Both the position numbers and the translations under genes were made by a program. From contig NIVC01003194.1 in the NCBI GenBank assembly GCA_002269645.1, positions 78,634 through 142,633 of the forward strand: a stretch of DNA of 64,000 nt. Reading direction: 5' to 3'. Of the stretch, positions 14,914 to 56,748 are shown piece by piece. Numbering within the stretch: position 1 is the stretch's first letter; the number at the start of each line of letters is the position of its first letter. A model generated the notes under the pieces. The model saw nothing but the letters and a program-made list of their open reading frames with translations. It had not been told where the DNA came from and searched no databases. The stretch is from Macrostomum lignano. Its lineage: Eukaryota.

Positions 14914-16293
14914 TCAATCAATCAATCTATCAACAAACAGATCAATCCATCGATCAATCTCACTGTCGCACTCTCCGCCGCTATTATCCAACTCCGAGTC
15001 CCACCGCTCCCAGGAGTCCAGTGCGCACTCGGACTCCGCATCGTCAACCCCGGGAACGAAGGCCCAGCCGCGCCGGGTTCGAGTCTCGTCTGAGGCCCGC
15101 AGGCGGAGCAGGTGAACCCGGCCTGGGTAGGCGGACTGGAGTGACAGATCAGGGAGACTGAGGTCATCCTTCACAAGCTCCAATTATCACTTTAGTAAAG
15201 AAAATGACTTATAGCAATCAAAATATCCTTAGAAACTAGGAATTATCCTAACAACTGGGAATAACCCTAGCAACCAGGAATAGCCCTAGCAACCCCTTAA
15301 TATCCCTAGCAAACCGGAAATACACTAGCAACCGGGAGTAACCCTAGCAACTGGGAATAACCTTAGCAACCGGGAATAACCTTAGCAACCGGGAATAACC
15401 TTAGCAACCGAAAATAACCTTAGCAACCGTGAATAACACAGCAACCGGGAATGACGCTAGCAGTCGGGAATAACCCTAACAAACAATAATAACCCTAGCA
15501 ACAGGAAATAACCTTAGCATAACCTTAGCAACCGAGCATGACCCTAGCAAACGGGTATAACCCTAACATCCGTAAATAGCCATAGCAACCGGGAATAACC
15601 CCAAAAAACCGTGAATAGCCATAGAAACCGGGAATGACCCTAGCAACCGGGAATAGCCATAGAAACCGGGAATGACCCTAGCAACCGGGAATAGTCATAG
15701 AAACCGGGAATGACCGTAGCAACCGGGAATAGCCATAGAAAAACCGGGAATGACCCTAGCAACCGGGAATAGCCATAGCAACCGGGAATAACCCTAGCAA
15801 CCGGGTATAACATTAGCTACAAAGAAAAGAATCGCTACTTTGGAATAAAGCAAATCCTTATCAAACCCTAGAAACCGTAGACACACTCAAAAACAGTCAG
15901 TCAGGACAATACCCTCACCAGAAAGTATTGGATATCGGTAGGCCTGCGTACATCTGACACCACCCAGAGCCCGTCAGGAGGCGGTTGCGCCATCTGCACC
16001 GCCAGCCGGCAGAAGCAGCCAGGATCGGCAGCTCGCAGCCGCTCACCCCAGGCGATCATGTCAGCCCTGAAGGCCTCCTTGTACTCTGTGGAATCCGCCA
16101 GTCGGTCTGCATCGAGTTGGTGCAGCCTGGCGTACTCCGCCTTCAGCGGCTGGCTGACCCGAACGCAAGCGGCTGGAAAGTTGCGCTCAGCCGCGGCGGC
16201 TAATATTCGAGAGGTCACGTGATCTTTACCGGATTTGCGCTTGCCGGAGATCAGCAGCAGCTGGCGAGGCTTGAGACTGCAGTTTGAGGCCGA
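14914..16293 (-). CDS. PMVK: Phosphomevalonate kinase (animal type), 2 exons; no genomic in-frame ATG at the N-terminus
   Basis: Exons 16293-15919 and 15135-14914 (GT-AG, phase 0). Motifs LLISGKRKSGKD, LKAEYA, YKEAFRADMIAWGE, VVSDVRRPTD and RGWAFVPGVDDAESECALD. The frame begins right after the acceptor ctttcatctcaactgcAG (16294-16295). Confidence 0.92.
15235..15815. repeat. Minisatellite, about 19 bp unit (ccctagcaaccgggaataa)
   Basis: Fills the PMVK intron. Confidence 0.9.
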
Positions 16294-16315
16294 CTGCAGT
16301 TGAGATGAAAGCGGT
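16294..16315 (-). promoter_or_regulatory. Candidate trans-splice acceptor of PMVK
   Basis: Pyrimidine-rich tract plus CAG immediately 5' of TCG GCC TCA; phase 0 with the PMVK frame. Confidence 0.6.
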
Positions 16316-16429
16316 GGGGCGAATCCAGTTAATATCCTGTACGCACACTGGGACTTGGAATTGGCATTTGGCGCTGATGCTTAACCTTCTTGAGGATGAT
16401 ATATGTATGAGGGAATAAAAGATTAAGGG

Positions 16430-16985
16430 AGAAATGGGGGATGGGGAGCTGAAGGGAGAAATGGGGAGAGGAGATGGTGGAAATAGGGAGGGAGAGATGA
16501 AGGGAGAGATGAAGGGAGGAAGAGATGAAGGGAGAAATGAGATGGACGAGGGATGATGGGAGAAAATGTTACAGAAAGAGATGAAGGGAGAGATGAAGTA
16601 AGAAATGGGAAAAGGGGAGGAGAGACGAAAAATGGGGAAAGGGGAAGATGCAGGGAGAAATAGGGAGAAATGAGGAGAGGGAGAGATGAAGGGAGAGATG
16701 GGGAGAGGGGGGAGATGAAGGGAGAAATATGGAGAGAAGGAGATGAAGGGAGAGATGAGGAGAGGGATTGAGATAGATGAAGGCAGAAATTGGTAGAGGA
16801 GATGAAGAAAGAAATGAGATAGACGAGGGATGATGGGAGAAAAGGTTAAAGGTAGAGATGAAGGGAGAAATGAGGACAGGGACTGATGAAGGAAGAGATG
16901 ACGGGAGAAATAGGGAAAGGGAAATGAAGGGAGGGATGAGAGAAACCGAAGAGATGAAGGGAGGATAGAAAGGGAGAGTTAGAAG
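16430..16985. repeat. GA-rich low-complexity degenerate repeat (gagatgaagggag)
   Basis: Purine-rich on the + strand. Confidence 0.85.
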
Positions 16986-17504
16986 GCAGACGCATAGATA
17001 AGGAACTCATGTAGGAGAAGCCAACACCCCAACAGAGCCAGAAAGCTCACTAGCCATATAAAAGCTGCCATAAATTCAGGACTTTAAGCATATAACACAT
17101 AGGCCTAGTGCTGTGGCCCCAGTATCTTTTTGTTAGTAAACTTTCAAGTTCCAGCACTATGAATTATTACTATGAATATTAGTAGCCACTGGCAAGTTGA
17201 ACACCAGCACAGTGAGAAAGGCAAACAAAACGCATAAAGTATACAGGCGTTAATGCTATTACTAATGTGGACAGATACTATAATTTATAAAACTTGTGTG
17301 CTCAACGATACGGGGCGTAGCTGAACTGCTGATTAGCAGGTTAATACGATGGATTTTAGATAATTCTCGACCTTCATTGTCCCGCAGAAGCGTTGTAACA
17401 TTTCTGGATAGCACACGGACATTGCAGTAGGAATTTTGAAACATTTTCTAAGTGGGGCGCTTTATATTCCCGAAGTTTTACAATCTCAAAGTTTTTTAAT
17501 ATCC

Positions 17505-18520
17505 TCAATAGTTCACAACCACAATGTTCACAATCCCCAATAGTTCACAACCACAATGTTCACAATCCCCAATAGTTCACAATCACGAATAGTTCACAAT
17601 CCCCAATATTTCACAATCCCCAATAGTTCACAAAAATCCAATAGTTCACAATCCCCAATAGTTGACAATCCCCAATAGTTGACAATCCCCAATAGTTCAC
17701 AATCCCCAATAGTTGACAATCCCCAATAGTTCACCATCCCCAATAGTTCACAATCCCCAATAGTTGACAATCCCCAATAGTTGACAATCCCCAATAGTTC
17801 ACAATCCCCAATAGTTCACCATCCCCAATAGTTCACAATCCCCAATAGTTCACAATCCCCAATAGTTGACAATCCCCAATAGTTCACAATCCCCAATAGT
17901 TCACCATCCCCAATAGTTCACAATCCCCAATAGTTGACAATCCCCAATAGTTCACAATCCCCAATAGTTCACCATCCCCAATAGTTCACAATCCCCAATA
18001 GTTCACAATCCCCAATAGTTGACAATCCCCAATAGTTCACAAACCCAAATAGTTCACAATCCCCAATAGTTCACAATCCCTAATAATTCACAACCACAAT
18101 GTTCACAATTCCAACAGTTCACAATCCTTAATAGTTCGAAATCCACAATAGTTCACAATCCCAAATAGTTCACAATCCCAAATAGTTCACAATCCCAAAT
18201 AGTTCACAATCCCAAATAGTTCACAATCCCCAATAGTTCACAATCCCTAATAGTTTACAATCCCCAATAGTTCACAATCCCCAATAATTCACAACCACAA
18301 TGTTCACAATTCCAACAGTTCACAATCCTTAATAGTTCGAAATCCACAATAGTTCACAATCCCTAATAGTTCACAATCCCAAATAGTTCACAACCACAAT
18401 GTTCACAATTCCAACAGTTCACAATCCTTAATAGTTCGAAATCCACAATAGTTCACAATCCCCAATAGTTCACAATCCCTAATAGTTCACAATCCAGAAT
18501 AGTTCACAATCCCTAATAGA
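17505..18520. repeat. Minisatellite, 17 bp unit (ttcacaatccccaatag)
   Basis: Tandem array between SMYD4 and PMVK. Confidence 0.95.
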
Positions 18521-19780
18521 TCACAAAAGGTTTCATAAACGTGACTAATATTCCGAATTATAGTCTGTGAACTAACTCCATAAAAATTGGTAAAGTTTAA
18601 GCAGCCCATATTCTGTGTTTGAGGTGTCGAAAAATTGAATTTTATTTGATTATAATGTCAACCTTATCAACTATATTTAGGCTAACGCAAGGAATGAAAA
18701 CGAACACCCTAGCGGACTGCAAGCCGAAACAAAACTAAGTGCTTCTCCAACAAAAACAACAATTTTACAAGATGAAAAACCTGCTAAAAACGCCCTGTTC
18801 ATCAATTAGACTAATTGGATATTTTCCCTACACAAAAGAAGCAAAAGTCTGGCATGCATTCTACTTAATGAGCTGGTTTTGTTGGCCAAGAATTGCCAAG
18901 AGCCTGGCTCAAAGGTTGCATAGAAATGATCAAGGTTGTTTTCTTAAAACTGTGTATGAGTGCTGTGCCTTCAGTGAATTTCCGTCAGTAGCTGGCTGTG
19001 AGCTTGAAGAAAAGCTACAGAATTACACAATTTTTTAATCATACTGCCAGTTTTTTAAATAAAATTTAATGAATGAATTCGCCAACAAGTTGCACAACTC
19101 GGAAGCTTTTGTTAGCTTCGGGACAATCTGCGAAAATTTATATTATTTAGCATAGCAAATATTAATTAACAAATTAATACACACGGTAAAATTTATCCAT
19201 AAAAACTGCTTGCAAAACAACTGATGCTAAAACTCTCCCTTAGTGATTTTTAAAAAAATTCGATATGTTTGCATTCATGCTTAAACCAGATTAAAGAGAA
19301 GGCACAAATTCTTTTGGAGCCAAATATTTGTAGCATAACAGGTAGAAAAAGCTGAAAAAGTGATGGTAAAACAGGGGTAAAATGCTTACTAAATAAATAA
19401 TGATGTACAATATTAGTAGCAATATATAATAAGTAATAAAGGTGAATAATCAGTTGTCGGTGTCAAAATTTCGCAACTAAGTATTAATAAGTCATGAATC
19501 ATGCAATTAAAAAATCTGGCCAAAAAACGGAGCACACAATATTGATTTTATTGACTTATTCCAAAGCTAAAATATAGAAAAAGAGCGTCATAAAAAATTC
19601 GATGCACATACACCTGTTGTTTCACTGCAAACAATAATACTGATATGATAGGATAAAGACTTCATGCAAATACCAGAACAAGGACTACTGACATTGCAAA
19701 TAACAATTCTTTTAGCTGAGATGGCATTAAAAACGCACAGATGGCATAGAAGTTGATTGTCAATCCATCACAACCAGCAT

Positions 19781-21724
19781 TCAGTCTGTCCCGCCGGTGT
19801 CCAAGCAGCCCCGCGCGCTCCACACCATCTTGACGCACTCTTCGGCGTCGTTAAACCACCGATGCGGCCGTCTGACACGACGCTGCAGCAGGCGGATTAG
19901 CGACAACAGTCGGGCCTCGAAACGCGAGTTCAGCTCGTTAGCTAAGAGTGGCGCGGAAGTGGAGAATGAGGACACGAACTCGGCTACAACCCCGACAGTT
20001 GATTCCACCTCTGCTTTGATTGCTGGATCGACAACAAAATTGGCAACATCGTATAAATTGTTTTTATCGGCACCCTCGACTTCGCTCTTATCGTCCTTAG
20101 CAATCGCATCAATCCATCTAGGCTGCAACGCCAACAAGCCATCATACAGTGGCCAATCATTCTCGCAAGCAACACAGTCGCAGTCGAACAAATACTGAGC
20201 TGCAAGACTTTCTTGACGCTGCTGTTTCGGATGCACAGCCCAATGCAAACCGTAGTTGTCAAGGAGCTCCTCGCCTTTAGCAATCGGTCGGAGAGCTCGA
20301 ATCTCCAGTCTCAAACCGGGACAAGTGACTCGCGATACATTCGGATCGCAAGAATGATTAATTAAACTAGCCGTTGGATACACAGCCGACCCAATGTCTC
20401 TGATAGTCAGTGCAGAAATATCCACTGAGCTGCCATTGTCAGTACTACTACTAGTAGTCAGCCTACTCGGCGGAGTGGACAATGCAGTTACATCGTGAGC
20501 ATTGCACGGCACCAGCATCAGATGGCGCAGCAGTGCTGCAACAAGTGGGGCGGCTACATCTAGCTGAGAATTTGCCTCAGACTCAACACTGAGCAGCAGA
20601 GCCATCTGGCAGGCAACGGCGACTCGCTGAGCCAAATCGCGACTCTCTCGCTGTCGTTCTCCAGCTACCAAAGCCAGCACCGATTGATAATCGCCAGCAG
20701 ATCCGAATACCGATTCGAAATCTTTGAAATTCTTTGCCTTAGCAACAGCTTGAGCAACGGAAACCGGACCGCCAGCAGCGATCACGGTGGCGAAAGCGAG
20801 CCGACCAATGCTCGCATTGAATGCGGAGTCCAACCAGCCAGCCAGCCAGCCGCATTCCACCCTGTGGACCGGGTCGTTATCCCGACAATTCTCCGAGCAG
20901 AAGCCAACAACTGAGCAGTCGCTACAGGGCAGCAACCGTTGGCAAGGTGCCAAGCAGGCTGAGCAGTGACTATCGCGAAGATTTGACAGCAGAATGGCGC
21001 TAAAAGCCGGCTCAGAGACCAACAGGTCTCCAACATCGACGTCTTCAAGAGTAAGAAGACAGCGACCGCGACTTTCGTCTGCCAGAGCGAGCTGCACCTT
21101 GGCGCTGGCGTGCGGCAGCTGTTGATTAAAATCCCGCAACAACGATTGAGATGCTGCTGCTGGCTGGGAAACACTTGAGGATTTCGACACTGACATTCTC
21201 TTCTGACAGTCAGCGATGCGACCTGTCAGCTTACCGGCCCGCTCGTCGCCATACGGCAACCGTAGAGCCGCTTCAGCATCGGCTATGGCTTCCGCATAGC
21301 AACCGAGACGTTTGAACACCAGCGAACGGTTGGCGAAAGCCACGGCAAGATCCGAGCTACCTGGCTGGGCGTGCCGGATGCATTCAGAAAATCGCAGCGC
21401 CGCTAAACGCAGCAGGCCGCAGTCGAGGGCTTCCAGACCGGCCGAACGAGCTTCCGCTAGGCGAGCTGGACTCTTGGCGTCGCTAGGCAACGGACGCTGA
21501 TGCTTTGTCCAGACGGTGGCACTTCTGGCAGCATAGTTAGACCAATCAATCGAGGCAAGCACTCGTTCGGCAAGGCGAAGTTCGAATTCCATGGATGCCG
21601 TGGAATCGTTGAGAATATTGGTTGCTTCGTTTGAGCCTAGCCAGTCAAGAGCTGCGGCTGCGGCTTTAGTACCGAGCGACTTCATGGACTGCAGCATGCT
21701 GCTGCTCTTGACTGGGGATGCCAT
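19781..21724 (-). CDS. SMYD4: SET and MYND domain lysine methyltransferase with N-terminal TPR (SMYD4-like), intronless, 647 aa
   Basis: TPR segment AVAFANRSLVF. MYND finger CSACLAPC-CSDC-FCSENC-HRVEC. SET motifs AVYPTASLINHSCDPN and ELLDNYG. Post-SET YLFDCDCVAC. Confidence 0.88.
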   Translation of the reverse strand: MASPVKSSSMLQSMKSLGTKAAAAALDWLGSNEATNILNDSTASMEFELRLAERVLASIDWSNYAARSATVWTKHQRPLPSDAKSPARLAEARSAGLEALDCGLLRLAALRFSECIRHAQPGSSDLAVAFANRSLVFKRLGCYAEAIADAEAALRLPYGDERAGKLTGRIADCQKRMSVSKSSSVSQPAAASQSLLRDFNQQLPHASAKVQLALADESRGRCLLTLEDVDVGDLLVSEPAFSAILLSNLRDSHCSACLAPCQRLLPCSDCSVVGFCSENCRDNDPVHRVECGWLAGWLDSAFNASIGRLAFATVIAAGGPVSVAQAVAKAKNFKDFESVFGSAGDYQSVLALVAGERQRESRDLAQRVAVACQMALLLSVESEANSQLDVAAPLVAALLRHLMLVPCNAHDVTALSTPPSRLTTSSSTDNGSSVDISALTIRDIGSAVYPTASLINHSCDPNVSRVTCPGLRLEIRALRPIAKGEELLDNYGLHWAVHPKQQRQESLAAQYLFDCDCVACENDWPLYDGLLALQPRWIDAIAKDDKSEVEGADKNNLYDVANFVVDPAIKAEVESTVGVVAEFVSSFSTSAPLLANELNSRFEARLLSLIRLLQRRVRRPHRWFNDAEECVKMVWSARGCLDTGGTD

Positions 21725-21914: not shown

Positions 21915-24030
21915 TGTATTTATGGCGTGGTGTTGTATCTAGATGGTGATGCTGTATCTATGGCGTAGTGTGGTGTTGTATCTAGATGGTGATGCTGTAT
22001 CTATGGTGTGGTGTTGTATCTAGATGGTGATGCTGTATCTATGGTGTGGTATTGTATTTAGATGGTGATGCTGTATCTATGGCGTAGTGTTATATTGTAT
22101 CTAGATGGTGATGCTGTATCTATGGCGTGGTGTTGTATCTAGATGGTGATGCTGTATCTATGGCGTGGTGTTGTATTGTATCTAGATGGTGATGCTGTAT
22201 CTATGGCGTGGTGTTGTATCTAGATGGTGATGCTGTATCTATGGCGTGGTGTTGTATCTAGATGGTGATGCTGTATCTATGGCGTAGTGTTATATTGTAT
22301 CTAGATGATGATGCTGTATCTATGGCGTAGTGTTGTATTGTATCTAGATGGTGATGCTGTATCTATGGCGTAGTGTTATATTGTATCTAGATGGTGATGC
22401 TGTATCTATGGCGTAGTGTTGTATTGTATCTAGATGGTGATGCTGTATCTATGGCGTAGTGTTATATTGTATCTAGATGGTGATGCTGTATCTATGGCGT
22501 GGTGTTGTATCTAGATGGTGATGCTGTATCTATGGCGTAGTGTTATATTGTATCTAGATGGTGATGCTGTATCTATGGCGTGGTGTTGTATCTAGATGGT
22601 GATGCTGTATCTATGGCGTGGTGTTGTATCTAGATGGTGATGCTGTATCTATGGCGTGGTGTTGTATTGTATCTAGATGGTGATGCTGTATCTATGGCGT
22701 GGTGTTGTATCTAGATGGTGATGCTGTATCTATGGCGTGGTGTTGTATCTAGATGGTGATGCTGTATCTATGGCGTAGTGTTATATTGTATCTAGATGAT
22801 GATGCTGTATCTATGGCGTAGTGTTGTATTGTATCTAGATGGTGATGCTGTATCTATGGCGTAGTGTTATATTGTATCTAGATGGTGATGCTGTATCTAT
22901 GGCGTAGTGTTGTATTGTATCTAGATGGTGATGCTGTATCTATGGCGTAGTGTTATATTGTATCTAGATGGTGATGCTGTATCTATGGCGTGGTGTTGTA
23001 TCTAGATGGTGATGCTGTATCTATGGCGTAGTGTTATATTGTATCTAGATGGTGATGCTGTATCTATGGCGTAGTGTTGTATTGTATCTAGATGGTGATG
23101 CTGTATCTATGGCGTAGTGTTATATTGTATCTAGATGGTGATGCTGTATCTATGGCGTAGTGTTATATTGTATCTAGATGGTGATGCTGTATCTATGGCG
23201 TGGTGTTGTATCTAGATGGTGATGCTGTATCTATGGCGTAGTGTGGTATTGTATCTAGATGGTGATGCTGTATCTATGGCGTAGTGTTGTGTTGTATCTA
23301 GATGGTGATGCTGTATCTATGGCGTAGTGTTGTATTGTATCTAGATGGTGATGCTGTATCTATGGCGTAGTGTTATATTGTATCTAGATGGTGATGCTGT
23401 ATCTATGGCGTGGTGTTGTATCTAGATGGTGATGCTGTATCTATGGCGTAGTGTGGTATTGTATCTAGATGGTGATGCTATATCTATGGCGTAGTGTTGT
23501 GTTGTATCTAGATGGTGATGCTGTATCTATGGCGTGGTGTTATATTGTATCTAGATGGTGATGCTGTATCTATGGCGTGGTGTTGTATCTAGATGGTGAT
23601 GCTGTATCTATGGCGTGGTGTTATATTGTATCTAGATGGTGATGCTGTATCTATGGCGTGGTGTTGTATCTAGATGGTGATGCTGTATCTATGGCGTAGT
23701 GTTATATTGTATCTAGATGGTGATGCTGTATCTATGGCGTAGTGTTATATTGTATCTAGATGGTGATGCTGTATCTATGGCGTAATGTTATATTGTATCT
23801 AGATGGTGATGCTGTATCTATGGCGTGGTGTTGTATCTAGATGGTGATGCTGTATCTATGGCGTAGTGTGGTATTGTATCTAGATGGTGATGCTATATCT
23901 ATGGCGTAGTGTTGTGTTGTATCTAGATGGTGATGCTGTATCTATGGCGTAGTGTTGTATTGTATCTAGATGGTGATGCTGTATCTATGGCGTAGTGTTG
24001 TATTGTATCTAGATGATGTGATGTATCTAT
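21915..24030. repeat. Minisatellite, 38/43 bp units (gtatctagatggtgatgctgtatctatggcgtggtgtt)
   Basis: About 2.1 kb array between SIRT6 and SMYD4. Confidence 0.95.
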
Positions 24031-24565
24031 ATTAGTATGTTGTATCTATGTTTGTACCCTACATGTATCTGTGTGTTGTATATGTAGGGTAGTGGGGCCT
24101 AGAGTCCTATCTGTATTGATTTCGACGTTGTGAGTCTGTTTCACTGAGCTGCAATAAATCATATCATGGCATAAAATGAAAATAATGTAGCAATGTATCA
24201 AATTATTCCTACTTAAGCTACTTAAAGTAGGATAGTAGGCATTTTATTTTATACTTTAAAATATAATAAAACTAGGAAAAATAATAACCGAAACAGCTTA
24301 AAACTATCGGAGATTTTATACGTATAACACAACAATTTTTTATAGAGAAAACTGATAATTGCATAGATTTGTATAACACTATTGACATGCACGAAAAGCT
24401 AAAAACACACGCATTTGGTAACTGATTAACAGACTACTTGGTTTGTAAGTTAAATACTGGTACGAACGTATTTGTACAAGACATAAATAAACCAAAACCA
24501 AGCGATATTTATAAATGCGAAAATGTCTATGTTTGAACGTTCAAACGGTACAAGAGAAATGTAAG

Positions 24566-25936
24566 CTAAGCAAGCTTTGAACGTTTAGTCGCGGTGGCAG
24601 AGTTAGACTCATCTGCGCTCGAATGTTCAAGTTTCTTTTTCATATCGGTGACAACTTCATCTTTGATTTTGATACTTTGATTTGAACTCTCCGACGAGGT
24701 GCGTTGAGCACTTTCCAAAGTGCGCTCTGTACTTTCAGAAATGCGTTCCAAAGTGCGCTCTGTACTTTCCGAAGTACAATGTGCACTTTCCGAAGTGCAT
24801 TTTGAACTTTCCAAAGTGCGTTCTGTACTTTCAGAAATGCGTTCCAAAGTGCGTTCTGTACTTTTCGAAGTACAATGTGCACTTTCCGAAGTGCATTTTG
24901 AACTTTCCAAAGTGCGTTCTGTACTTGGAATCTCGCATTTAGCTTCTTTTTGAGCTTCTCTATCGATTTTTTGATTCTGATCAGACTCGGCGAATCGCCA
25001 TGGAAACCGTTCACTCTTTCGCGTATGCTTAGAAAACAGTCTCAACGGTTGCAGGCGAAGCAACGGCCTCAGCATCTCTTCGGCATCAATGCCGAGCAGT
25101 TCTCTACAGACCAACGCCATGACAAGATCGCAACGAGCATTTATACGCAGATAACTCTGAGCATCTTTCTTTGTAGGCTGCAGATTAATAATGACTAATT
25201 TGCCGCCCATTGTGGGCAGATCGGCGGCCGGAACAATCTGCAAACTGGTGCCCAGAGTCAGATTAACGGTAGCCCGACTGGAATGCTCGCGAGCTCGACG
25301 AAGATCTACCTGAGGCAGCTGATGCTCCCAGTCTAGCACCGTGTCCAGCATCTGGCCGCCGCAGATGCCGTCAACACTGTCACCAGCATCGCCACCGGCT
25401 TTGACGGATTTCTTTCTGCCTCGCCTAGCCGGAGCTCCGCACCGCCTCCCGGTGGCTTTCTGACCGACCGTCTCCACCGGTTGGTCTCTCGCCCGGTGCA
25501 AGCCGCACCGGGCGCACCGCTCAACAAACATATCGCCATGCAAAATCGACAACCGATTGCGAGGAAATCCAGACCGAAGGTGCAAACCGTCAACATTCTG
25601 CGTCACCAGGTAGTGAACGAATCCGGCCGTTTCCAAGGCAACCAGAGCGGCGTGAGTAAGTGTTGGCTGAGCCTCTTCAAACTTGGCCCCGGCTTCAACT
25701 GTTCGACCTTCGCGTTCTAGAGTCCAGACGCCGTTGGGGCCGCGGAAATCCGGGATTCCGGCCGAGGTGCTGACGCCGGCTCCCGTGTGGACAACGACTC
25801 GAGCTCCGGGCTGTCGAATCAGGTCCACCAGCTGACGAGCTTTCAACTCCCAATCGGCTTGGGACTCGTGAGTTTCGGGCAGGCCCAGAGTGCCTTTGTC
25901 CGAGTATTCGGACAGCCCGGCCGAGTAGTTAGCCGA
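24566..25936 (-). CDS. SIRT6: NAD-dependent deacylase sirtuin 6, intronless coding region, about 457 aa including a supplied Met
   Basis: N-terminus SANYSAGLSEYSDKG matches the SIRT6 start (M)SVNYAAGLSPYADKG. Also HTGAGVSTSAGIPDFRGPNGVW, QNVDGLHLRSG, the catalytic His in ILHGDMF, zinc-binding Cys residues and DTVLDWE. The frame begins after the acceptor ccttcctcccacctccAG (25937-25938). Confidence 0.92.
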   Translation of the reverse strand, partial: SANYSAGLSEYSDKGTLGLPETHESQADWELKARQLVDLIRQPGARVVVHTGAGVSTSAGIPDFRGPNGVWTLEREGRTVEAGAKFEEAQPTLTHAALVALETAGFVHYLVTQNVDGLHLRSGFPRNRLSILHGDMFVERCARCGLHRARDQPVETVGQKATGRRCGAPARRGRKKSVKAGGDAGDSVDGICGGQMLDTVLDWEHQLPQVDLRRAREHSSRATVNLTLGTSLQIVPAADLPTMGGKLVIINLQPTKKDAQSYLRINARCDLVMALVCRELLGIDAEEMLRPLLRLQPLRLFSKHTRKSERFPWRFAESDQNQKIDREAQKEAKCEIPSTERTLESSKCTSESAHCTSKSTERTLERISESTERTLESSKCTSESAHCTSESTERTLERISESTERTLESAQRTSSESSNQSIKIKDEVVTDMKKKLEHSSADESNSATATKRSKLA

Positions 25937-25956
25937 CTGGAGGTGGGAGGAAGGAG
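25937..25956 (-). promoter_or_regulatory. Candidate trans-splice acceptor of SIRT6
   Basis: Strong pyrimidine tract plus CAG exactly where the conserved initiator Met would lie. Confidence 0.7.
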
Positions 25957-26039
25957 ATGAACTGTTGGTGTGTTGCCGTACCGACTGTTTTTCTATAACG
26001 TTATGGACCCTAATCATCTCTATTCTCTCTAAAAAATCC

Positions 26040-43025: not shown

Positions 43026-43194
43026 CGATTTCCTTAACTCTGCTGTTTACTGTAGGTAATAGATAAGGAGTATCCTTTAAAAATTTACAAATTGACAAAT
43101 TTTAAAACGCATGTATAATATTCAGAGCTCTTCTAAATGGTGGGTGCACGTTGGAGTAGTGGGGCTTTACTAATTGAAACGAGTGTACATTGGC

Positions 43195-46699: not shown

Positions 46700-47880
46700 G
46701 TTAAGGTTCAGGTGCAGTTTAGGTTAGAGTGTAGTTTAGGGTTTAGGTTACGGTTCAGATCAGGGTCTAGGTTAGGGTCCAGTTTAGGGTTTAGGTTACG
46801 GTTCAGATCAGGGTCTAGGTTAGGGTCCAGTTTAGGGTTTAGGTTACGGTTCAGATCAGGGTCTAGGTTAGGGTCCAGTTTAGGGTTTAGGTTACGGTTC
46901 AGATCAGGGTCTAGGTTAGGGTCCAGTTTAGGGTTTAGGTTACGGTTCAGATCAGGGTCTAGGTTAGGGTCCAGTTTAGGGTTTAGGTTACGGTTCAGAT
47001 CAGGGTCTAGGTTAGGGTCCAGTTTAGGGTTTAGGTTACGGTTCAAATCAGGGTCTAGGTTAGGGTCCAGTTTAGGGTTTAGGTTACGGTTCAGATCAGG
47101 GTCTAGGTTAGGGTCCAGTTTAGGGTTTAGGTTACGGTTCAGATCAGGGTCTAGGTTAGGGTCCAGTTTAGGGTTTAGGTTACGGTTCAGATCAGGGTCT
47201 AGGTTAGGGTCCAGTTTAGGGTTTAGGTTACGGTTCAGATCAGGGTCTAGGTTAGGGTCCAGTTTAGGGTTTAGGTTACGGTTCAAATCAGGGTCTAGGT
47301 TAGGGTCCAGTTTAGGGTTTAGGTTGCGGTTCAGATTAGGGTCTAGGTTAGGGTCCAGTTTAGGGTTTAGGTTACGGTTCAGATCAGGGTCTAGGTTAGG
47401 GTCCAGTTTAGGGTTTAGGTTACGGTTCAAATCAGGGTCTAGGTTAGGGTCCAGTTTAGGGTTTAGGTTGCGGTTCAGATTAGGGTCTAGGTTAGGGTCC
47501 AGTTTAGGGTTTAGGTTACGGTTCAGATCAGGGTCTAGGTTAGGGTCCAGTTTAGGGTTTAGGTTACGGTTCAAATCAGGGTCTAGGTTAGGGTCCAGTT
47601 TAGGGTTTAGGTTACGGTTCAGATCAGGGTCTAGGTTAGGGTCCAGTTTAGGGTTTAGGTTACGGTTCAGATCAGGGTCTAGGTTAGGGTCCAGTTTAGG
47701 GTTTAGGTTACGGTTCAGATCAGGGTCTAGGTTAGGGTCCAGTTTAGGGTTTAGGTTACGGTCCAGATCAGGGTCTAGGTTAGGGTCCAGTTTAGGGTTT
47801 AGGTTACGGTTCAGATCAGGGTCTAGGTTAGGGTCCAGTTTAGGGTTCAGGTTAGGATTTAGGTCAGGGTTTAGGCTAAA
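46700..47880. repeat. 48 bp higher-order repeat built from eight telomere-like hexamers (ggttagggtccagtttagggtttaggttacggttcagatcagggtcta)
   Basis: About 24 near-identical units, each containing TTAGGG twice. Confidence 0.95.
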
Positions 47881-47952: not shown

Positions 47953-50305
47953 TCACATGGCAGTCACCCGCTCAATACCAATTAACCGACTCAACAAATC
48001 AATCCACTGAGCAGTTTTATTAACCAACATAATCTTGTTAGTCATCAGTTGGCTGCCCGGCTCTGACACATCAGCAGCATCAGCAGCCGGCAGCACTCGA
48101 ACTCGGTGATAAAATCTGGCAAATTCTCGACAGAGCTGCTCCAATCGGTGCACCAGCTGGTTTAAATCGCGATAGCAACAACAATCAGCAGAATTACTGA
48201 GCAGCAGATCAGTTTGGCACTGAGCCAATAAATCAGCCAGGGTGTCCAGCTGACCCCAGGCCAACGCCCAGACTGAATCTCCATCAGCAGCTCTGCCTGT
48301 TGCAGCAGACTCATCGAGTTTTTCTACCGCTGATACGCCAGCAGCTCGCTGCATCAGGGACTCAGCTCGGGCCCTGTTGTACAGGGCGAACAGCAGAGAC
48401 CGCCGACGTTCCTGCGAGAACTTAGCCGTCTCCTGAGGCCGAGACCAGAGCAACTCAGCGATCAAAACCGACTGTGCTAACCGACTTGACAGACTCACAC
48501 CAGAATCGCTGTCCTCAATGCAGCGATCTGAGATTGATGAAGACACTTTGGCGATGTAGTCGGCGAGGCTGCAGTAGGAGGCTGGATCGACCTGGGAAGA
48601 GATGAAGAACAATATGCCAATTTTGCTAAGACATAATCAGCAACATTGAAAAGTCGCAACTCTAAGTGCCAGTGAGCGATTTCTCTTGGACTATTCTGAA
48701 ATAAAAGATGCGGGAAAACTGATCGGGTTAGCTTTGATCCGTCCAACCCTCGCACACCGCTCCCCCCAGTTCATTCATCAACTCAAGTCTGCCGCGACGT
48801 AGCTGAGCTGCGTCACTCGCAAAGATTGAGAGACTTTACCTGCACTCTCAAAAGCGGTGATCACAGACAGAATCTTCTGTGATGGCGACTTGATTCCGAC
48901 TCAAGTCCCGAAATTTTCCCGGATCAGCTTTGCCCGGAATTTGGCTGAAATTCGGGTCAAGGGAGCTGATCCGGGTGAATTTTCCGGATTATTTGGTCCG
49001 GATCACTGGGGAATTCCGACTCAAGTCCCGAAATTTTCCCGGATCAGCTTCGCCCGGAATTTGGCTGAAATTCGGGTCAAGGGAGCTGATCCGGGTGAAT
49101 TTTCCGGATTATTTGGTCCGGATCACTGGGGAATTCCGACTCAAGTCCCGAAATTTTCCCGGATCAGCTTCGCCCGGAATTTGGCTGAAATTCGGGTCAA
49201 GGGAGCTGATCCGGGTGAATTTTCCGGATTATTTGGTCCGGATCACTGGAGAATTCCGACTCAAGTCCCGAAATCTCACCCGGAACATTTTCACCCGGAA
49301 CACTACTGAAATTCGGGCCTACACCCAGAATTCCATAGTGTTCCGGGTGAAAAATTCCGGAAAATCAGACCGGAACAGCTTTCCTTTTCCCGAAAATTTT
49401 CCGGATCATATTTCCGGATCTTTTTCCGGAACAGGGGGCTGTTCCGGGCCAAAAAAGCTGATCCGGGCCTTCACCCGGAAATCAATTAAAAATTGGGCCC
49501 GGATCACAAAATTCCGGAAAAAATTCCGGGTGAAACGTTCGATGGGTACACAAGTAAAATTTTCATTTTGTCTATAAATTATTGAATCAATCATTCACTG
49601 ACCTTCATATACTACTTACTACTATATTAGGTACTTTTAAGAAAAAATATCGCCAGCTCAAATTCTTACCGGACCAACAATCAAGTCGCGCTGGGCCCTC
49701 GAGTCATCTCTATGAGTAAAATTTAGCAAATCAGACGCAGAAGACACTACTAATGAAATGTGTCTGTCAGTAGTAAGCCAGTCACGATATCTCGAGTCAA
49801 ACTCAATCACACCGCGGTTCAAAGTAGCAGTGTTTGCACTACTGTTAGTAGTAGGCAAACCTTCCAAATCCAATAGTCGATGAGCCAAACAGCCCCACAG
49901 CAGGGCACGCAGAGACCGGAACTCGCAATCGGGATAATAGCGAACAAACAGCACTGGACTGACAGATGATGACTTTGCCGAATAATCCTGCCGCAATTGA
50001 GGCACTTTGGCATTCAAAATTCGATCAAGGCACACTGCTCGATTTAATATCAAACGCAGAGCGATAATTGGTGCTGCTGACGAGTAGGTCGCGAGTTCGC
50101 GTCGGGCAATAATCAATTTCAATTGTGGATGATTGTCAATGCTAGCTATTAAATCTGTAGTTGATCTGGTAGAAGACTGTGATTTTAAAATTAGTAGAAG
50201 GTCACACGGTTCAGATCGATAGGTGAGCTGGTGGCACCGTTGAATGCTAGAGATTGCAGCAGTGCCCGTGCAGCTGAGAAGCAGGTGGAGACGAATGACT
50301 GACAT
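47953..50305 (-). CDS. DALRD3: DALR anticodon-binding domain-containing protein 3-like, 2 exons, about 424 aa
   Basis: Exons 50305-49670 and 48591-47953 (GT-AG, phase 0, giving IVGP|VDP). C-terminal DALR-like region LLFALYNRARAESL and LCREFARFYHRVRVL, ending LIGIERVTAM. No synthetase catalytic motifs seen. Confidence 0.7.
48890..49272. repeat. 120 bp unit repeated about 3.1 times, followed by a CCGG(A)-rich region to about 49540
   Basis: tcaagtcccgaaat recurs at 48901, 49021, 49141 and 49261; lies in the DALRD3 intron. Confidence 0.9.
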
Positions 50306-51029
50306 CAGGGACTGGGATTGGCTGCGGGCATGAGGTTGACAGGTGAGTCATTTAGATTATTCAGACTCAAATAGCATTAGCAACTCCCTCACGGGGGATT
50401 TCTCAAGTACTAAAAATGACCACTCACCAAACATCTACGATAAATGTGTGAACATTTAGAACAATATAAAACATCCATCTAGTAGTACACAGCTCTGTTA
50501 CATTGTATCTACAATTGTCAACAGAATAGGATTGTAAATAACTAGATGGGCTACTCTGTAGTTTTATATACTCAGTAAAACAGCTTTCTACTTTCAGTTC
50601 AGTAGCAAAGAAGAATACATGAGCTATTTTATAAAAATAGAGGCAGCTGAAATCACTTTGATAAGTTTAGAAGCCCAAGCTTGCAGGCGTAAAACAACTT
50701 GCTAATTGGTTCAGCAATAATGTACATTGGCCAGTCCACTGAAGTGTACATGGCAGCTTTGGGCTGGAATTCCAAGAAAGGCAATAAAAATTGGGGTGGG
50801 GGGGGTAATGTGGGACGGCGCGGTTGGAGGGTTTAAGATCTGGGGGGGGTAAGAGCCATTAAAAAAGCCTTGGCTTTAAAAATACATCAAAATGCTTCTG
50901 TTTAAATTACTACTGAACTTAAAGTAGCTTACACGCAAATGTCCATCTAGTTGCTCTAGTACGAGTATCAGTGGATTAGTGATGCATTTATAATGAACCA
51001 AAAAAACAAAACACTTCAACAGCAATTAC

Positions 51030-54000
51030 TCACCAAACTTGACAATCAACAAACAGGTCTTTGAGTTGTTCAGCTGGCGGCAACTTCTGTCCAATGAACA
51101 CGATTCGTTGCAGCTGTTGCTGGGCGGAACAACCATCAGTATCGTTAGAAACTGGAGCCGGCCGCAATTCGAACAGCTCGTACACCCCCTGCACGGAGTA
51201 AAGAGCTGGGGACGAAGCTTCACAGCTTTCGTCTATGAGGCGGAGCAGGCCCTGGTTGAGTAGATGAGTAGATTAATTAGTCTGCAAGAATCTAACTTAT
51301 ATCATGACAAACTAATTGCAATTAACTGATTGCTGTGTACAGTGAGCCTGTAAGGTTTTTTGGAGACATCTTAACACGCACTGCAATTAAGAGAGTCAAC
51401 CAAAAATACAGCCTTAGACAGATGAGTCCACTGAATAGACAGGTGAGAGTCCACTGAATAGACAGATGAGTCCACTGAATAGGCAGATGAGTCCACTGAA
51501 TAGGCAGGTGAGAGTCCACTGAATAGGCAGATGAGTCCACTGAATAGACAGGTGAGAGTCCACTGAATAGACAGGTGAGAGTCCACTGAATAGACAGGTG
51601 AGAGTCCACTGAATAGACAGGTGGGAGTCCACTGAATAGACAGGTGAGATTTTCTCACATTTCACACAATGAGACACATGATGAGTTCACACAATGAACA
51701 CAATGAGACACATGATGAGTTCACACAATGAACAATGAGACACATGATGAGTTCACACAATGAACAATGAGACACATGATAAGTTCACATAATAAGACAC
51801 ACGAGTTCACATAATAAGACACACGAGTTCACACAATAAGACACATGAGTTCACACAAAAAGACACATGAGTTCACACAAAAAGACACATGAGTTCACAC
51901 AAAAAGACACATATTTTGTCACCTTAGTCCTCAGAAACACAGCTTCGGGAAACATTGGTTTATCGCTTTGCCACAACAGGTCGCCGAGCAGTCGTTCAAC
52001 TCGATCTTGCTCGAACACGGCGTCAGGCTCGAAGTCGATAGCCAGAGTGCCGACATCAGCTCGCAGTTTGGTTCGATGCGACTCGCTACTCGCGCCAGTG
52101 TCGTGCAGTCGGTCAGCCAAGTCGGTAGCATTGCGATAGGCCCCCAGGCCTAGGATGGCATCCAGCGGGCGATGCCTCGCTCACTTTTAGCGATTCTACA
52201 AGCGGAGTTGACGCCTCTGACCAGAGCTTCCACACTGTCCAATGAGGTCAACTCCGCAGCTGAAGATGATGCTGACTGATTCGATAGCAGGTCGGTTTTG
52301 CTTAGCAGCACGGTGTCAGCGCAGGCTACCTGGCGTTGCCATTCGACTTCTGAGAACTGGCGGCTGGCATTCAGGCTGTCCACCTGATTGGCGTTCGGGG
52401 ATCGGATCGGTAAACAAATCCCATTACCAATCCTGATCCCATTACCAATCCTGAATCCCTGATCCCATCATCTGAATCCCTGATCCCATTATCCGAATCC
52501 CTGATCCCATCATCTGAATCCGTGATCCCATTATCCGAATCCCTGATCCCATCATCTGAATCCCTGATCCCATTAGCTGAATCCTTGATCTCATTACCTG
52601 AATCCCTGATTCCATTACCTGAATAATTGATCTCATTACGTGAATCCCTGATCCCATTACCTGAAACCCTGATCCGATTACCTGAATCCCTGATCCGATT
52701 ACCCGAATCTCTGATCTCATTACCTGAATCCCTGATCCCATTATCTGAATCCCTGATCCCATCATATGAATCCCTGATCCCATAATCTGAATCTCTGATC
52801 CCGTTACCTGAATCCCTGATCCCATCATCTGAATCTCTGATCCCGTTACCTGAATCCCTGATCCCATCATCTGAATCCCTGATCCCATCATCTGAATCCC
52901 TGATCCCATTACGTGAATCCCTGATCCCATCATCTGAATCCCTGATCCCATTACGTGAATCCCTGATCCCATTATAGACTCTGATCCCACATCTCACAGC
53001 TTAAACCCAGACCCACTCCAAACCAGCTCACCACAGTGACAAAGCCGTCCAGACAGACCAAACTCTCGAGCTGCTCATCCAACCAAAACAGAGCTGCAAT
53101 GGGCCCCGGCTCAGCCAATCCAGTTGTCTCCAGCAGCACGTGATCAAATCGACCTCGAAGCTCCATCAGCCGTTCAATCGCGGCAACACCAGCATGTTTC
53201 AACGAGCAGCAGAGGCAGCCATTGCCCAGCTCCAGCCATTCTTCGTAGCGCTTCTGACCATCGCTAGAGTTCTTGCTGTCGCCTGAGCGGATTGTGAGTG
53301 AGTAGCTAGTTGATAATTATTGACTTTAGATCACACCCCAGGTCTCACCTCATCGATCTAGTGGCTCAGTCACAGTCACAACGCTAAACAAAGCAGCACT
53401 GTAGATGGGATTTTTGGGAGAATATAGGCAAAAGATCCCTTCAGATGGGATTTGGGGGGATTTTAGGCAAAAGATCCCTTCAGATGGTATTTTAAGAAAT
53501 TTTAGGCAAAAGATCCCTTCAGGTTGGATTTGGGGGAATTTTAGGCAAAAGATCCCTTCAGATGGGATTTATAGGAATTTTAGGCAAAAGATCCCTTTAG
53601 ATGGGATTTTGGGGATTTTTAGGCAAAAGATCCCTTCAGATGGGATTATGGGGATTTTAGGCAAAAGATCCCTTCAGATGGGGTTTTGGTGAACTTAGGC
53701 AAAAGATCCCTTCAGATGGGGTTTTGGTGAACTTAGGCAAAAGATCCCTTCAGATGGGGTTTTGGTGAATTTTAGGCAAAAGATCCCTTCAAATGGGATT
53801 TTAAGGAATTTTAGGCAAAAGATCCCTTCTGATGGGATTTTGGGGAATTTTAGGGAAGATATTCACTCCGTTGGGATTTTACGGTTTTACGATTCTAAAG
53901 AGTCGTATCTGTAGAATCACTGAGTTGCGTCTAAAGCGCATCTGCGTCACGTCACTTTATGAATTATAATCGCCTTTCACATTTATAACAACTCTATTTT

Positions 54001-54678
54001 GCCTACTTGAGTTAGTAGTTTTTTTCGCAACTCACGCGAAAAATCCTGCAACTCACGTGATGCGCTCGTAACTCAACAGTCGCCTCTCAGTTGCATTACA
54101 GTCGTTTGAGTTGTTAAAAAGTCACTAGAGTAGTCACTATTTAAGTAATTCTAGTGGTATGGCGCTCTAATGCGCCAGCGGCCCAGGCTCAATTCCAAGT
54201 GCAGTCAGATTAATTTGAGGCTAAATTGAAATCTTTGCCTCTGATCGTGCAATTAACGGCTAATAAAGTTAGGGAAGCTGTAAACTCCTGTGTCAGCGTG
54301 TGCCTGTGCGTATGACTGCGTAAATATCTGCATAGTACTTAAGCCTCTACGCTAAGCCTCTCAAAAATTACCTGTCTGATTGTCCTCAGCAACAGTGAGA
54401 GCCGCCTCAACAGCGGCAGAGTCGCCAAATTCGTTCATAATTACAGCAATCCGTCTGCCGTGCTGCTCAGTGAGAATGTAGTTCAACAAAGTAGTCTTTC
54501 CAGCGCCCAGATAACCAGTGATCACTGTGACAGGCACTGGAGGCAGATCAGTGACTGCAGGCTCAGCATTGGCTAAGCTACTACTGGGGATTTCATCCAG
54601 ACTCACCAGATCTGGACAATCTTCATCATCATCTTGAGCAGCTTTAGTGGCACTGTTAAGATTCTCTGGCTGATTCAT
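51030..54678 (-). CDS. ZNG1: Zinc-regulated GTPase metalloprotein activator (COG0523; ZNG1/CBWD), 4 exons, about 413 aa, one 1-nt frameshift
   Basis: Exons 54678-54372, 53282-53032, 52383-51923 and 51251-51030. N-terminal CPDLV motif, Walker A GYLGAGKT, NEFG, ELGNGCLCCS, ETTGLAEP, KTDL and CobW_C-like RTKGLL/QGVYELF. Exon 3 is 461 nt and changes frame at about 52167-52169. Confidence 0.9.
51415..51655. repeat. Minisatellite, 21/23 bp units (gagtccactgaatagacaggtga)
   Basis: ZNG1 intron 3. Confidence 0.9.
51665..51910. repeat. Degenerate minisatellite (gagttcacacaa-agacacat)
   Basis: ZNG1 intron 3, next to the donor site. Confidence 0.85.
52425..52990. repeat. Minisatellite, 21 bp unit (tgaatccctgatcccatcatc)
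   Basis: ZNG1 intron 2. Confidence 0.95.
53405..53860. repeat. Minisatellite, 39 bp unit (aggcaaaagatcccttcagatgggattttggggaatttt)
   Basis: ZNG1 intron 1. Confidence 0.9.
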
Positions 54679-56748
54679 TTCTCTGTCACTGTCCCCCAGC
54701 TGAAAGAAATAGTTTGGGGGGATTGAGAAATTAGAAGTATATAATCTCAGAAAACTTTTATATGTACCCGATACCGAACATCGAAGAAGCATTCGCCAGC
54801 CTCGAAGGAAGCCAGCTATTCAGCACGTTTGACTTGAACAGCGGCTACTACCAAATTCCTCTGCGTCCAGAAGATCAAGATCTAACTGCTTTCGCTACGC
54901 TGCACCGCGGACAATTCACCTAAAATGTTATGCCTATGGGATTAAGTTCAGCACCAGCTAGCTTCATGCGCCTCATGAACGCTGTGCTTAACGGGATTGC
55001 CTAAAAAAGTGCAATAGCCTACCTGGATGACGTAATCGTCTATTCTAAGAAATTTAACGACCATCTACGGCATATGGAAGAAGTACTCAAGCGAGTCCAA
55101 GACGCTAATCTCAAGTTTAAAGGCAAGAAGTGCCATCTATTTCGGGCAAGTCTAAACTATCTGGGACATGTTGTAACGAAGGATGGAATCAAGACCGACC
55201 CAGCTAAGATCGAGGCAATTCAAACCTGGCCAAGACCAAGAACAGCGCGACAACTTAAAAGTTTTGTCTGCACGTGCGCTTACTATGCAAAATTTGTACC
55301 TGGCTACTTGCTGCTCCGCTCCACGATTTAATTAAAGAGAAGAAAATCCGCAATTTCAATTGTCTATGGGGAAAAGCCCAGCAAGGCGCGTTCGACCAGC
55401 TCAAGGCAGCCTTGACTTCAACATCAGTGCTCGCGTATCCGCAGTTCAGCGAGGATCCTAATGTTATGTTTATCCTGGACACGGATGCCTCTGCGACCAG
55501 AATCGGAGCCTGCCTGAGCCAACGCCAAGCTGATGGAGTTGAGCGACCAATTGACTATTTCTCCCGGCGACTCAAACCGGCCGAAGCCCGATATCCGATT
55601 ACGAAACAAGAACTATTGGCAGTCGTAGATGGGATGTGACACTTCCGATTCTACCTGCTGGCCAAGAAGTTCATCTGCCGAACTGACCATGCCGCATTGA
55701 CTTGGATCTTAAGGCGAACTCAACAAGTAGGAATCTTTGGACGATGGCTACAGCGCCTCAGTGAATTCGAGTTCAAGATCAGCATCAAAAATCAAGTCAG
55801 CATCAAAACGCCGACGGTCTCTCGAGACGGCCCGAGAACGGCGCTAAATGCATGGAGGAGGCTCAGCGCGAGACAGCTGATGAGGACCAAAGTAAGCATG
55901 CAGCCAGTCGCGATAACGGGCGCAGTGGCGCCGAAGGTCCACGACAGCAGCCACCGTAGCCCTCCACCAAGCAAGAAGCAACCGACCCGCCGGAATCGAC
56001 GAAAACCGCCGACGAAGCCGAAAGAGTCCAACGGCGAGGCTACGCCGCCAGCAACATCGACAGCCGACAGCGAGCCGCTGACAGCGCTGCACCCGCCGGC
56101 GACGAAGCCGAGGCCATCAGCCAGCCGTTTTCGAGACTCACAGAGGTCGCCCACCAGCTTTAGCAGCACGACATGTTGCCCTTCAAGGAGCCGCCGTCTA
56201 CTAGCTGAAGGCGACGAGGACAGCGACCACAGCGCAGCCAGCGACGACCGCTGCCAACCCGCTCGCAGTCCGGTGTTCGAGAAAAGAGTGAGATTCAGCA
56301 GTGACGCGGACAGCTCTGCTGCCTCACCCTCGGCCTCATCTGCTGACAAATCTAATTCTGCCGACAATGACGCCGAAATGACCGACGAGGATCGGCCTTC
56401 AAATGCAACAGCCCGGCAATCGGTCAGAGTAGCGATCATGCGGAGGGAGCTCCAGACCCAGAACCATGCCGCCACAGCCGAAGCCGCGCCGCCTAATTCG
56501 ACTAACCGACGCCAAACATTGAATCTAACTGATCACATCCCGAGGCCAGTCACCCGCGAGGAGCTCCAGACCCATCAGCGTGCTGACTCTGCCATCGCGA
56601 TGATGATCAACTTAATCGAAAGTCGACAACCGAAACCGCCGCTAAATCAGCGCTTGAATCTGACGAGAGACAGAGACGAGAGGAATCTCCTAGCGTTCTA
56701 TGAGCAATTGACTATTGCGAGTCCGAGACGACGGACTATTAGTCATCC

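Follow-up and report, generated by a model that had tools for sequence, protein, structure and literature searches.

A run of nine co-oriented genes with spliced leader acceptors in Macrostomum lignano and its possible division into polycistronic units

Operons resolved by spliced leader (SL) trans-splicing, including some with repeat-inflated spacers, have been published for the flatworm Macrostomum lignano (PMC8629364), in agreement with the initial annotation of the DNA studied here, which took such operons to be established in flatworms. We have analysed a 64-kb window, the whole stretch of DNA under study, which corresponds to the final 64 kb of contig NIVC01003194.1 (142,633 bp) of the Mlig_3_7 assembly (NIVC00000000; Wudarski et al. 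2017, PMC5730564) and in which nine consecutive genes lie on the minus strand at positions 14914-54701. Over window positions 35936-14566, the contig sequence (locus L001) agrees with the window at 100%. The window ends at the contig end, and contig coordinates are obtained by adding 78,633 to the window positions used throughout. Because the sequenced line has a duplicated large chromosome, near-identical paralogous contigs are found in the assembly (GCA_002269645.1), in which three contigs encode the SIRT6 protein found in the window. In unique sequence, the paralogs L002 and L003 are ~98-100% identical to the window, with one 184-nt stretch upstream of PMVK at 93%, and the divergence is therefore too low for constraint analysis of the spacers.

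M. lignano has one 35-nt SL, CGGTCTCTTACTGCGAAGACTCAATTTATTGCATG, which ends in ATG (Ustyantsev & Berezikov 2021, PMC8629364). The same study estimates that ~30% of the genes are SL-spliced and 15% are in operons; ~40% of the SL-spliced genes were assigned to operons and ~60% were not, so that an SL acceptor alone does not imply co-transcription. When repeats, which enlarge the spacers, are subtracted, a spacer mode of ~100 bp is exposed, and a repeat-adjusted distance of 1 kb was taken as the operon cut-off (PMC8629364). The largest operons contain nine genes (two cases), 75% of operons contain two, and transcriptional units built from RNA-seq are prone to breaking in repeat-rich spacers (PMC8629364). 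The flatworm SLs reported so far all end in an AUG that can be used as start codon (Cheng et al. 2006, as cited in PMC12582326).

Gene order, spacers and tandem arrays

Eight of the nine genes have consecutive GenBank records, PAA52719 to PAA52726, which correspond to PMVK, SMYD4, SIRT6, a membrane protein, MICU1, ZNF, PRELID3 and ZNG1; for DALRD3, no separate coding sequence is annotated on NIVC01003194.1. The layout originally proposed, nine minus-strand genes in a row, was recovered: no other coding sequence lies between them, all GenBank coding sequences of the examined loci are co-oriented, no gene of the opposite strand falls inside the cluster, and the long plus-strand open reading frames (ORFs) found there are confined to tandem arrays. 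Position 54701, at which the run ends, corresponds to the A in the acceptor AG of ZNG1. Pfam matches or homologs bear out the identities given to ZNG1, DALRD3, PRELID3, ZNF, MICU1, SIRT6, SMYD4 and PMVK, and that of the sixth gene, which had been called DGAT1-like, had to be abandoned: neither its exons nor the rebuilt 363-aa protein gave an MBOAT match or any other Pfam match up to E = 1. Nine co-oriented genes would occur by chance with p ~0.004 for one set, and since a genome with ~35,000 non-redundant genes would give many such runs, co-orientation alone proves little.

Distances from each stop to the next start, in gene order from ZNG1, were 0.71, 1.7, 2.6, 1.4, 3.2, 1.9, 2.8 and 3.5 kb, as expected from the range of about 0.7-3.5 kb given before; the gap after MICU1 becomes 5.4 kb if the membrane protein starts at its SL form (29387). 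Subtraction of tandem-repeat bases from the stop-to-acceptor distances left 708, 559, 874, ~566, 1859-2717, 470, 721 and 2044 nt in the same order. Thus, six of the eight repeat-adjusted gaps, measured from the stop codon, are shorter than 1 kb. The two long ones are upper bounds, as 3′ untranslated regions and transposon-derived repeats remain in them.

The initial annotation placed a minisatellite in most gaps, and at least one was indeed found in every gap except ZNG1-DALRD3. The DALRD3-PRELID3 spacer holds a 48-bp-unit array of ~24 copies (46699-47875), and the PRELID3-ZNF spacer has arrays across 43169-45615, with a 21-bp unit at 44441-45615, beginning 8 nt past the PRELID3 stop, and a 39-bp unit at 43169-43721. 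Between ZNF and MICU1 there are 27 copies of a 31-bp unit (39315-40151), and the MICU1 stop is followed by ~69 copies of a 20-bp unit (32973-34316). The membrane-protein gene is associated with a 21-bp-unit array (29640-31009), which is either the intron of its long isoform or sequence upstream of its SL acceptor. Downstream of this gene lie 27 copies of a 54-bp unit (26035-27475), ending by our count 98 nt before the SIRT6 acceptor; the SIRT6-SMYD4 spacer contains ~51 copies of a 43-bp unit (21930-24049), and the SMYD4-PMVK spacer (arrays across 16485-18526) contains a 17-bp unit (17501-18526) and a degenerate 28-bp unit (16485-16901). According to Tandem Repeats Finder, arrays cover 65% of the bases of introns, 56% of gaps, 48% of the downstream flank and 3% of exons; tandem repeats make up 13% of the whole M. 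lignano genome. The claim that the spacers have been inflated by repeats is thus upheld by the coverage of the gaps, and the same inflation is not special to them, as introns carry even more.

Spliced leader acceptors and start codons

GenBank coding sequences for M. lignano are derived from RNA-seq and cut where SL reads peak, and the assignments of SL acceptors below are based on this annotation. Five genes have 5′-partial GenBank coding sequences that start exactly after YNCAG/ (the slash marks the cut): PRELID3 (ttttcag/AAA), SIRT6 and PMVK on NIVC01003194.1, and ZNG1 and the membrane protein in paralogs. Acceptors of at least five of the nine genes therefore serve as 5′ ends in RNA-seq-based records, and four genes downstream of ZNG1, namely PRELID3, the membrane protein, SIRT6 and PMVK, are SL-spliced by their annotated starts. 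At the acceptors of these same five genes (29387 in the case of the membrane protein), the AUG of the SL is in frame with the ORF. DALRD3, ZNF, MICU1 and SMYD4 have candidate acceptors only; in the annotation, neither MICU1 nor SMYD4 begins directly after an AG.

Two genes had been reported to have no ATG, and this holds for SIRT6 and PMVK at the conserved N-terminus. SIRT6 is a single-exon gene (24566-25938, minus strand; AG at 25938-25937, exon start 25936) identified by the SIR2 Pfam domain and by homologs. Its GenBank product starts at the acceptor ctccag/TCG with SANYSAGLSEY, without an ATG, whereas the orthologs of other animals open with MSVNY(S/A)(D/E)GLS (MSVNYSDGLSPY, MSVNYAEGLSEY); the AUG of the SL would therefore supply exactly the absent methionine. 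PMVK (14914-16295, minus strand; P-mevalo_kinase Pfam domain) has its AG at 16295-16294 and two exons, 16293-15919 and 15135-14914, separated by an intron that carries a 19-bp-unit array. It lacks an ATG, its GenBank coding sequence starts at the acceptor ctgcag/TCG, and the rebuilt 198-aa protein is identical to PAA52719. From their sequences, SIRT6 and PMVK appear to depend on the terminal AUG of the SL for a start codon. Separately, the C-terminal tail of SIRT6 (24710-24926, minus strand) is a coding tandem repeat of 2.3 copies of a 96-nt unit, 97% identical, encoding STERTLE...SKCTSESAHCTS, and is the only sizeable array within an exon.

SMYD4, also a single exon (19781-21724, minus strand), has its own ATG at 21724 and was recognised by a SET Pfam match together with a sub-threshold match to the MYND finger. 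Its candidate acceptors are CAACAG/ (21728), which is out of frame, and TGCCAG/ (21745), which is in frame. PRELID3, the third single-exon gene (45623-46218, minus strand; PRELI Pfam domain), has its AG at 46218-46217, its exon start at 46216 and its own ATG at 46192, with the AUG of the SL in frame 8 codons 5′ of it. The start predicted from this acceptor matched the GenBank coding sequence when the record was looked up, and a version starting at the ATG is not on record; in one paralog the start is displaced by 6 nt. ZNF, a C2H2 zinc-finger gene by its Pfam match (40600-43051, minus strand), consists of exons 43025-42378 and 41112-40600, and this single-intron model, whose intron carries a 1.2-kb array, reproduces the 386-aa GenBank product. 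At its candidate acceptor CCTACAG/ (exon start 43049), the AUG of the SL would be followed at once by TAA, and the GenBank start is the gene's own ATG at 43025.

The boundary between ZNG1 and DALRD3 has a particular structure. ZNG1, a CobW-type GTPase by its cobW Pfam match (51030-54701, minus strand), has its acceptor AG at 54701-54700, its exon start at 54699, its ATG at 54678 and its TGA stop at 51032-51030. In a paralog, the coding sequence opens with LGDSDREMNQ straight after tttctttcag/CTG, which corresponds to window position 54699. DALRD3 (47953-50322, minus strand; DALR_1, E = 1.6e-7) has the acceptor CCCGCAG/ (exon start 50321), an ATG at 50305 and exons 50305-~49667 and ~48606-47953. 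The stop codon of ZNG1 is overlapped by a GT donor, TG/GTGAGT, with the exon ending at 51034 (cut between 51034 and 51033). In the model of the 282-kb homeolog, this donor is joined to an acceptor ~200 nt before the DALRD3 ATG (window ~50512), which remakes the TGA stop; in the model of the 549-kb copy (P0137), it is joined to CCCGCAG/ (50321), giving an in-frame ZNG1-DALRD3 protein of 806 aa. Because the stop-codon donor splices across the 0.7-kb gap, most of this gap is an intron and the two genes lie on a common pre-mRNA. Two length differences in this region are recorded here as observations in their own right: the 23-bp-unit array in the last intron of ZNG1 spans 0.23 kb in the window (51415-51651) and ~4.2 kb in the 282-kb homeolog (13700-17950 of sequence L008), and the stretch 48891-49547 of the DALRD3 intron, with its 120-bp-unit array, has no counterpart in that homeolog.

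The sixth gene encodes a lineage-restricted multi-pass membrane protein (27848-31600, minus strand; stop 27850-27848). Only two matches to it were found among 5.8 billion proteins, both from M. lignano, and UniRef labels a longer model of it 'GPI ethanolamine phosphate transferase 3'. In paralogs, the coding sequences open right after cggcag/ATC (window 29387, in frame), and an alternative acceptor 13 nt downstream (29374) is the one annotated on NIVC01003194.1. A second 5′ form (UniRef sequences P0122 and P0143) has an exon at 31600-31167 with its own ATG, joined by a GT-AG intron to ~29247, and therefore needs transcription from upstream of 31600. Such transcription could come from an internal promoter, or from a polycistron through a candidate acceptor ATATAG/ (exon start 31615) that is in frame with the AUG of the SL.

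MICU1 (34819-39196, minus strand) comprises at least six exons and was identified by calcium uptake protein 1 homologs and EF-hand Pfam matches, with its ATG at 39196-39194 and its stop at 34821-34819. Two single-G deletions in short G runs, at ~35990 (by comparison with the 549-kb paralog) and ~39040 (deduced from UniRef and 282-kb homeolog models), break the frame, and as a result the GenBank protein on NIVC01003194.1 has only 323 aa (38990-35948). These deletions could be PacBio homopolymer errors or true decay of one duplicate. We considered MICU1 as a further gene without ATG and excluded it, since its ATG is merely masked by the missing G at ~39040. The MICU1 ATG closes a stretch of 10 nt that is identical to the 3′ terminus of the SL (TTATTGCATG; 39203-39194, minus strand), the sole exact match of this kind in the window, and in the 282-kb homeolog the annotated MICU1 coding sequence begins 6 nt after the ATG that bears this SL-like match. 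A degenerate SL copy was rejected as its explanation, as the local alignment score of 20 is reached at several other places in the window and no site matches the 18-nt tail of the SL when up to 3 mismatches are allowed; the 10 nt could be left over from an SL-bearing cDNA or have arisen by chance.

In the 64-kb window there was no SL RNA gene and no SL copy of at least 12 nt, and Rfam and tRNA scans of it were empty. Among Logan transcript contigs for relatives of SIRT6 and MICU1, L005 and L006, which show the N-terminus of the orthologs, carry an ATG themselves and lack an SL. L007, whose product is related to the second MICU1 paralog of M. lignano, likewise lacks an SL at its 5′ end.

Transcriptional units and the number of promoters

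The GenBank locus tags of these genes preserve the units from which they were cut. According to the legend of Supplementary Fig. 5a in Wudarski et al. (2017, PMC5730564), unit Mlig030697.1 holds genes Mlig030697.g1 and Mlig030697.g2; genes with the same locus-tag prefix therefore come from one unit family, and non-homologous neighbours with a common prefix were cut from one assembled precursor. On NIVC01003194.1, ZNG1, ZNF and MICU1 are Mlig009362g4, g6 and g8, the membrane protein is Mlig015824g2 and PMVK is Mlig002561g5, so that the annotation of this contig joins ZNG1 through MICU1, five genes over 20 kb. On the 549,844-bp paralog, ZNG1 and PRELID3 are g1 and g2 of Mlig027886, and ZNF and MICU1 are g2 and g1 of Mlig009362. 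The 282,874-bp homeolog NIVC01001474.1 has ZNG1 and PRELID3 as Mlig025027 g1 and g2, ZNF and MICU1 as Mlig005864 g1 and g2, and SMYD4 and PMVK as Mlig029511 g1 and g2, and on the 27,802-bp paralog SMYD4 and PMVK are Mlig029511 g3 and g4. Thus, ZNF and MICU1 have a common prefix on all three contigs examined for them, and the SMYD4-PMVK gap, in spite of its repeat-adjusted length above 1 kb, is spanned by one unit in two paralogs. Overall, the annotation spreads the nine genes over three unit families, and the family changes between MICU1 and the membrane protein and again between the membrane protein and SIRT6. Apart from the tags, the records of NIVC01001474.1 (PAA67566-67572) run PMVK, SMYD4, membrane protein, MICU1, ZNF, PRELID3 and ZNG1; a SIRT6 coding sequence is missing between the second and the third of these, and the gene may have been lost from this homeolog or left unannotated.

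The sequence upstream of ZNG1 differs between copies. By alignment, homology to the 282-kb homeolog breaks at window position 54763 and resumes at 61856, with 7.1 kb absent from the homeolog. This insertion (54763-61856) contains, on the plus strand, a 5′-truncated Ty3/gypsy-like element with reverse transcriptase (RT), RNase H and integrase ORFs at ~54762-58823 (Pfam RT_RNaseH_2, 2.4e-26; Integrase_H2C2, 1.3e-13; RVT_1, weak). It starts 64 nt upstream of the ZNG1 acceptor, and the ZNG1 promoter would therefore not be adjacent to the gene in this copy. An 88/54-bp tandem repeat (58993-59415) and GC-rich ORFs on both strands at ~59.9-60.7 kb also lie in the insertion. On the homeolog, no coding sequence was found within 10 kb upstream of ZNG1. 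At the other end of the cluster, plus-strand ORFs at 4509-6359 (88 aa and 245 aa), located outside arrays, are Pro/Gln-rich with a possible coiled coil and have no Pfam match; they might be part of a gene convergent with PMVK, and the run of co-oriented genes would then stop there. The 15-kb array-rich stretch downstream of PMVK has no clear gene and includes an (AGTC)n microsatellite (6987-8603) of 404 copies with 100% identity.

Taking these data together, we regard it as about an even bet that the cluster, whose nine genes are unrelated and mostly of conserved housekeeping type, consists of two to four adjacent polycistronic units whose genes are matured by SL trans-splicing. The 35-nt SL ending in AUG would be trans-spliced onto the AG acceptor just 5′ of each coding region. 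Its AUG would act as the start codon of SIRT6, PMVK and the SL form of the membrane protein, would stand in frame a few codons before the gene's own ATG in ZNG1 and PRELID3, and, should the candidate acceptor of ZNF be used, would be stopped at once in that gene. One block would comprise ZNG1, DALRD3, PRELID3, ZNF and MICU1, the membrane-protein gene would possibly be a unit by itself, and a last block would comprise SMYD4 and PMVK, perhaps preceded by SIRT6. The minisatellites fill introns as much as spacers, and the enlargement of the spacers would have no part in the mechanism. The initial annotation had read the cluster as a polycistron resolved by SL trans-splicing; the acceptors, the SL-dependent starts and the unit-linked blocks favour the splicing part of this proposal, and a single transcript of nine genes receives no support from the annotation. 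Gene order, acceptors, frames without ATG and the unit-family tags are observed directly; co-transcription from shared promoters and the number of those promoters are deduced.

Several observations weigh against such a division into polycistronic units. The repeat-adjusted distances from MICU1 to the membrane protein (1.9 kb when the upstream exon is taken as its start and 2.7 kb when 29387 is) and from SMYD4 to PMVK (2.0 kb) leave room for a promoter in each gap. The GenBank 5′ ends of SMYD4 (21721, just past the genomic ATG), MICU1 (38990) and the ZNG1 copy of NIVC01003194.1 (54684) do not follow an AG, which makes SL use at these genes only putative here. They may reflect imprecise peak calling in the annotation pipeline, and the 6-nt offset of PRELID3 in a paralog also points to boundaries that are inexact in some cases. 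The units are StringTie/TACO assemblies of short reads, which may merge same-strand neighbours by read-through or break in repeats, and both their links and their breaks are therefore soft evidence. Finally, the unit membership of SIRT6, SMYD4 and PRELID3 on NIVC01003194.1 is deduced from paralogs and from the numbering.

The softness of the breaks gives some room to a single nine-gene operon, with a promoter upstream of ZNG1, a primary transcript of at least 40 kb that SL trans-splicing and polyadenylation would turn into nine mRNAs, and unit breaks that would be assembly failures in arrays; we hold this to be possible but unlikely. In its favour, the nine genes have one orientation and no further coding sequence intervenes, units tend to split in repeat-rich spacers, and two nine-gene operons have been published (PMC8629364). 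At the second break, the adjusted gap from the membrane protein to SIRT6 is only 470 nt, followed by 721 nt from SIRT6 to SMYD4; at the first, the candidate acceptor ATATAG/ (31615), in frame with the AUG of the SL, could receive the leader, and ZNG1 is a plausible first gene, as the preceding 10 kb are free of coding sequence on the homeolog. Against this, the annotation contains three unit families, the adjusted gap of 1.9-2.7 kb between MICU1 and the membrane protein exceeds the published 1 kb, and operons of such size are very rare, two in the genome compared with 75% that have two genes. Moreover, the promoter would have to act across or within the ~7-kb insertion in this copy. That one promoter, beyond or inside this insertion, drives all nine genes as a transcript of at least 40 kb (possibly more than 47 kb), nearly half of it minisatellite, seems to us rather doubtful. 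If true, this operon would be one of the two largest in M. lignano, would probably rank in physical length with the longest SL operons known from animals, and would serve as a natural experiment on the load of repeats and transposons that a polycistron can bear.

At the other extreme, each of the nine genes might be transcribed independently from its own promoter in the preceding gap, with a short upstream segment removed by trans-splicing. The co-orientation would then be fortuitous or inherited from an ancient operon, and read-through and short-read assembly would have created spurious multi-gene units. Such an arrangement accords with the ~60% of M. lignano SL-spliced genes that lie outside operons and with the size of the gaps, which at 0.7-3.5 kb raw and 0.5-2.7 kb adjusted have space for promoters, 2 kb of upstream sequence being enough as a promoter in M. 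lignano transgenic reporters. It is nevertheless improbable, as three or four paralogous contigs independently show multi-gene units, the spliced ZNG1-DALRD3 fusion model needs one pre-mRNA over both genes, the 3′ exon of ZNG1 begins ~200 nt before the DALRD3 ATG, and arrays lie 8 nt past the PRELID3 stop and 98 nt before the SIRT6 acceptor.

Comparison with known operons

SL trans-splicing, the maximum of nine genes, repeat-inflated spacers and the AUG of the SL are already published for M. lignano or other flatworms, and the annotation of the locus is public. The locus illustrates that sequence alone can flag an SL operon through co-oriented genes, AG acceptors tight on coding regions and start-less frames. 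The homeologs, with arrays differing up to ~18-fold and one upstream insertion, offer a comparison of the spacer and upstream load that is tolerated by polycistronic transcription. In addition, the stop-codon donor of ZNG1, by which the stop is either restored or replaced by a fusion to DALRD3, represents a compact case of cis- and trans-splicing competing for one acceptor.

The closest known system is that of the SL operons of M. lignano itself (PMC5730564, PMC8629364), with which the cluster shares organism, assembly, SL, same-strand runs, acceptors before downstream genes, repeat-enlarged spacers and conserved housekeeping genes; the published maximum is also nine genes, and the genes of the locus already carry unit-based GenBank tags. 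The cluster differs from these operons in nothing of kind, except that two of its gaps exceed 1 kb after adjustment when measured from stop codons. With the SL2-type operons of C. elegans, it would share the expression of co-oriented, functionally unrelated genes as a polycistron resolved by 3′-end formation and SL trans-splicing. In contrast to C. elegans, M. lignano has one SL and no SL2, the raw spacers measure 0.7-3.5 kb instead of ~100 nt, and the first gene, ZNG1, takes the same SL as the others. As regards the AUG of the SL as initiator in flatworms (Cheng et al. 2006, as cited in PMC12582326), the SIRT6 and PMVK ORFs fit well, being in frame from the acceptor without an AUG of their own; that study, as cited, dealt with parasitic flatworms, whereas initiation at the leader is deduced here from sequence and annotation. 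Lastly, the polycistrons of parasitic flatworms (Calvelo et al. 2025, PMC12582326) resemble this locus in that one acceptor can serve both cis- and trans-splicing and in that chimeric gene models are read as pointing to a polycistronic pre-mRNA; candidate operons there likewise reach nine genes at most. Those polycistrons were defined with a cut-off of up to 300 bp and mostly contain two genes, whereas the M. lignano spacers described here are far longer by virtue of their minisatellites.

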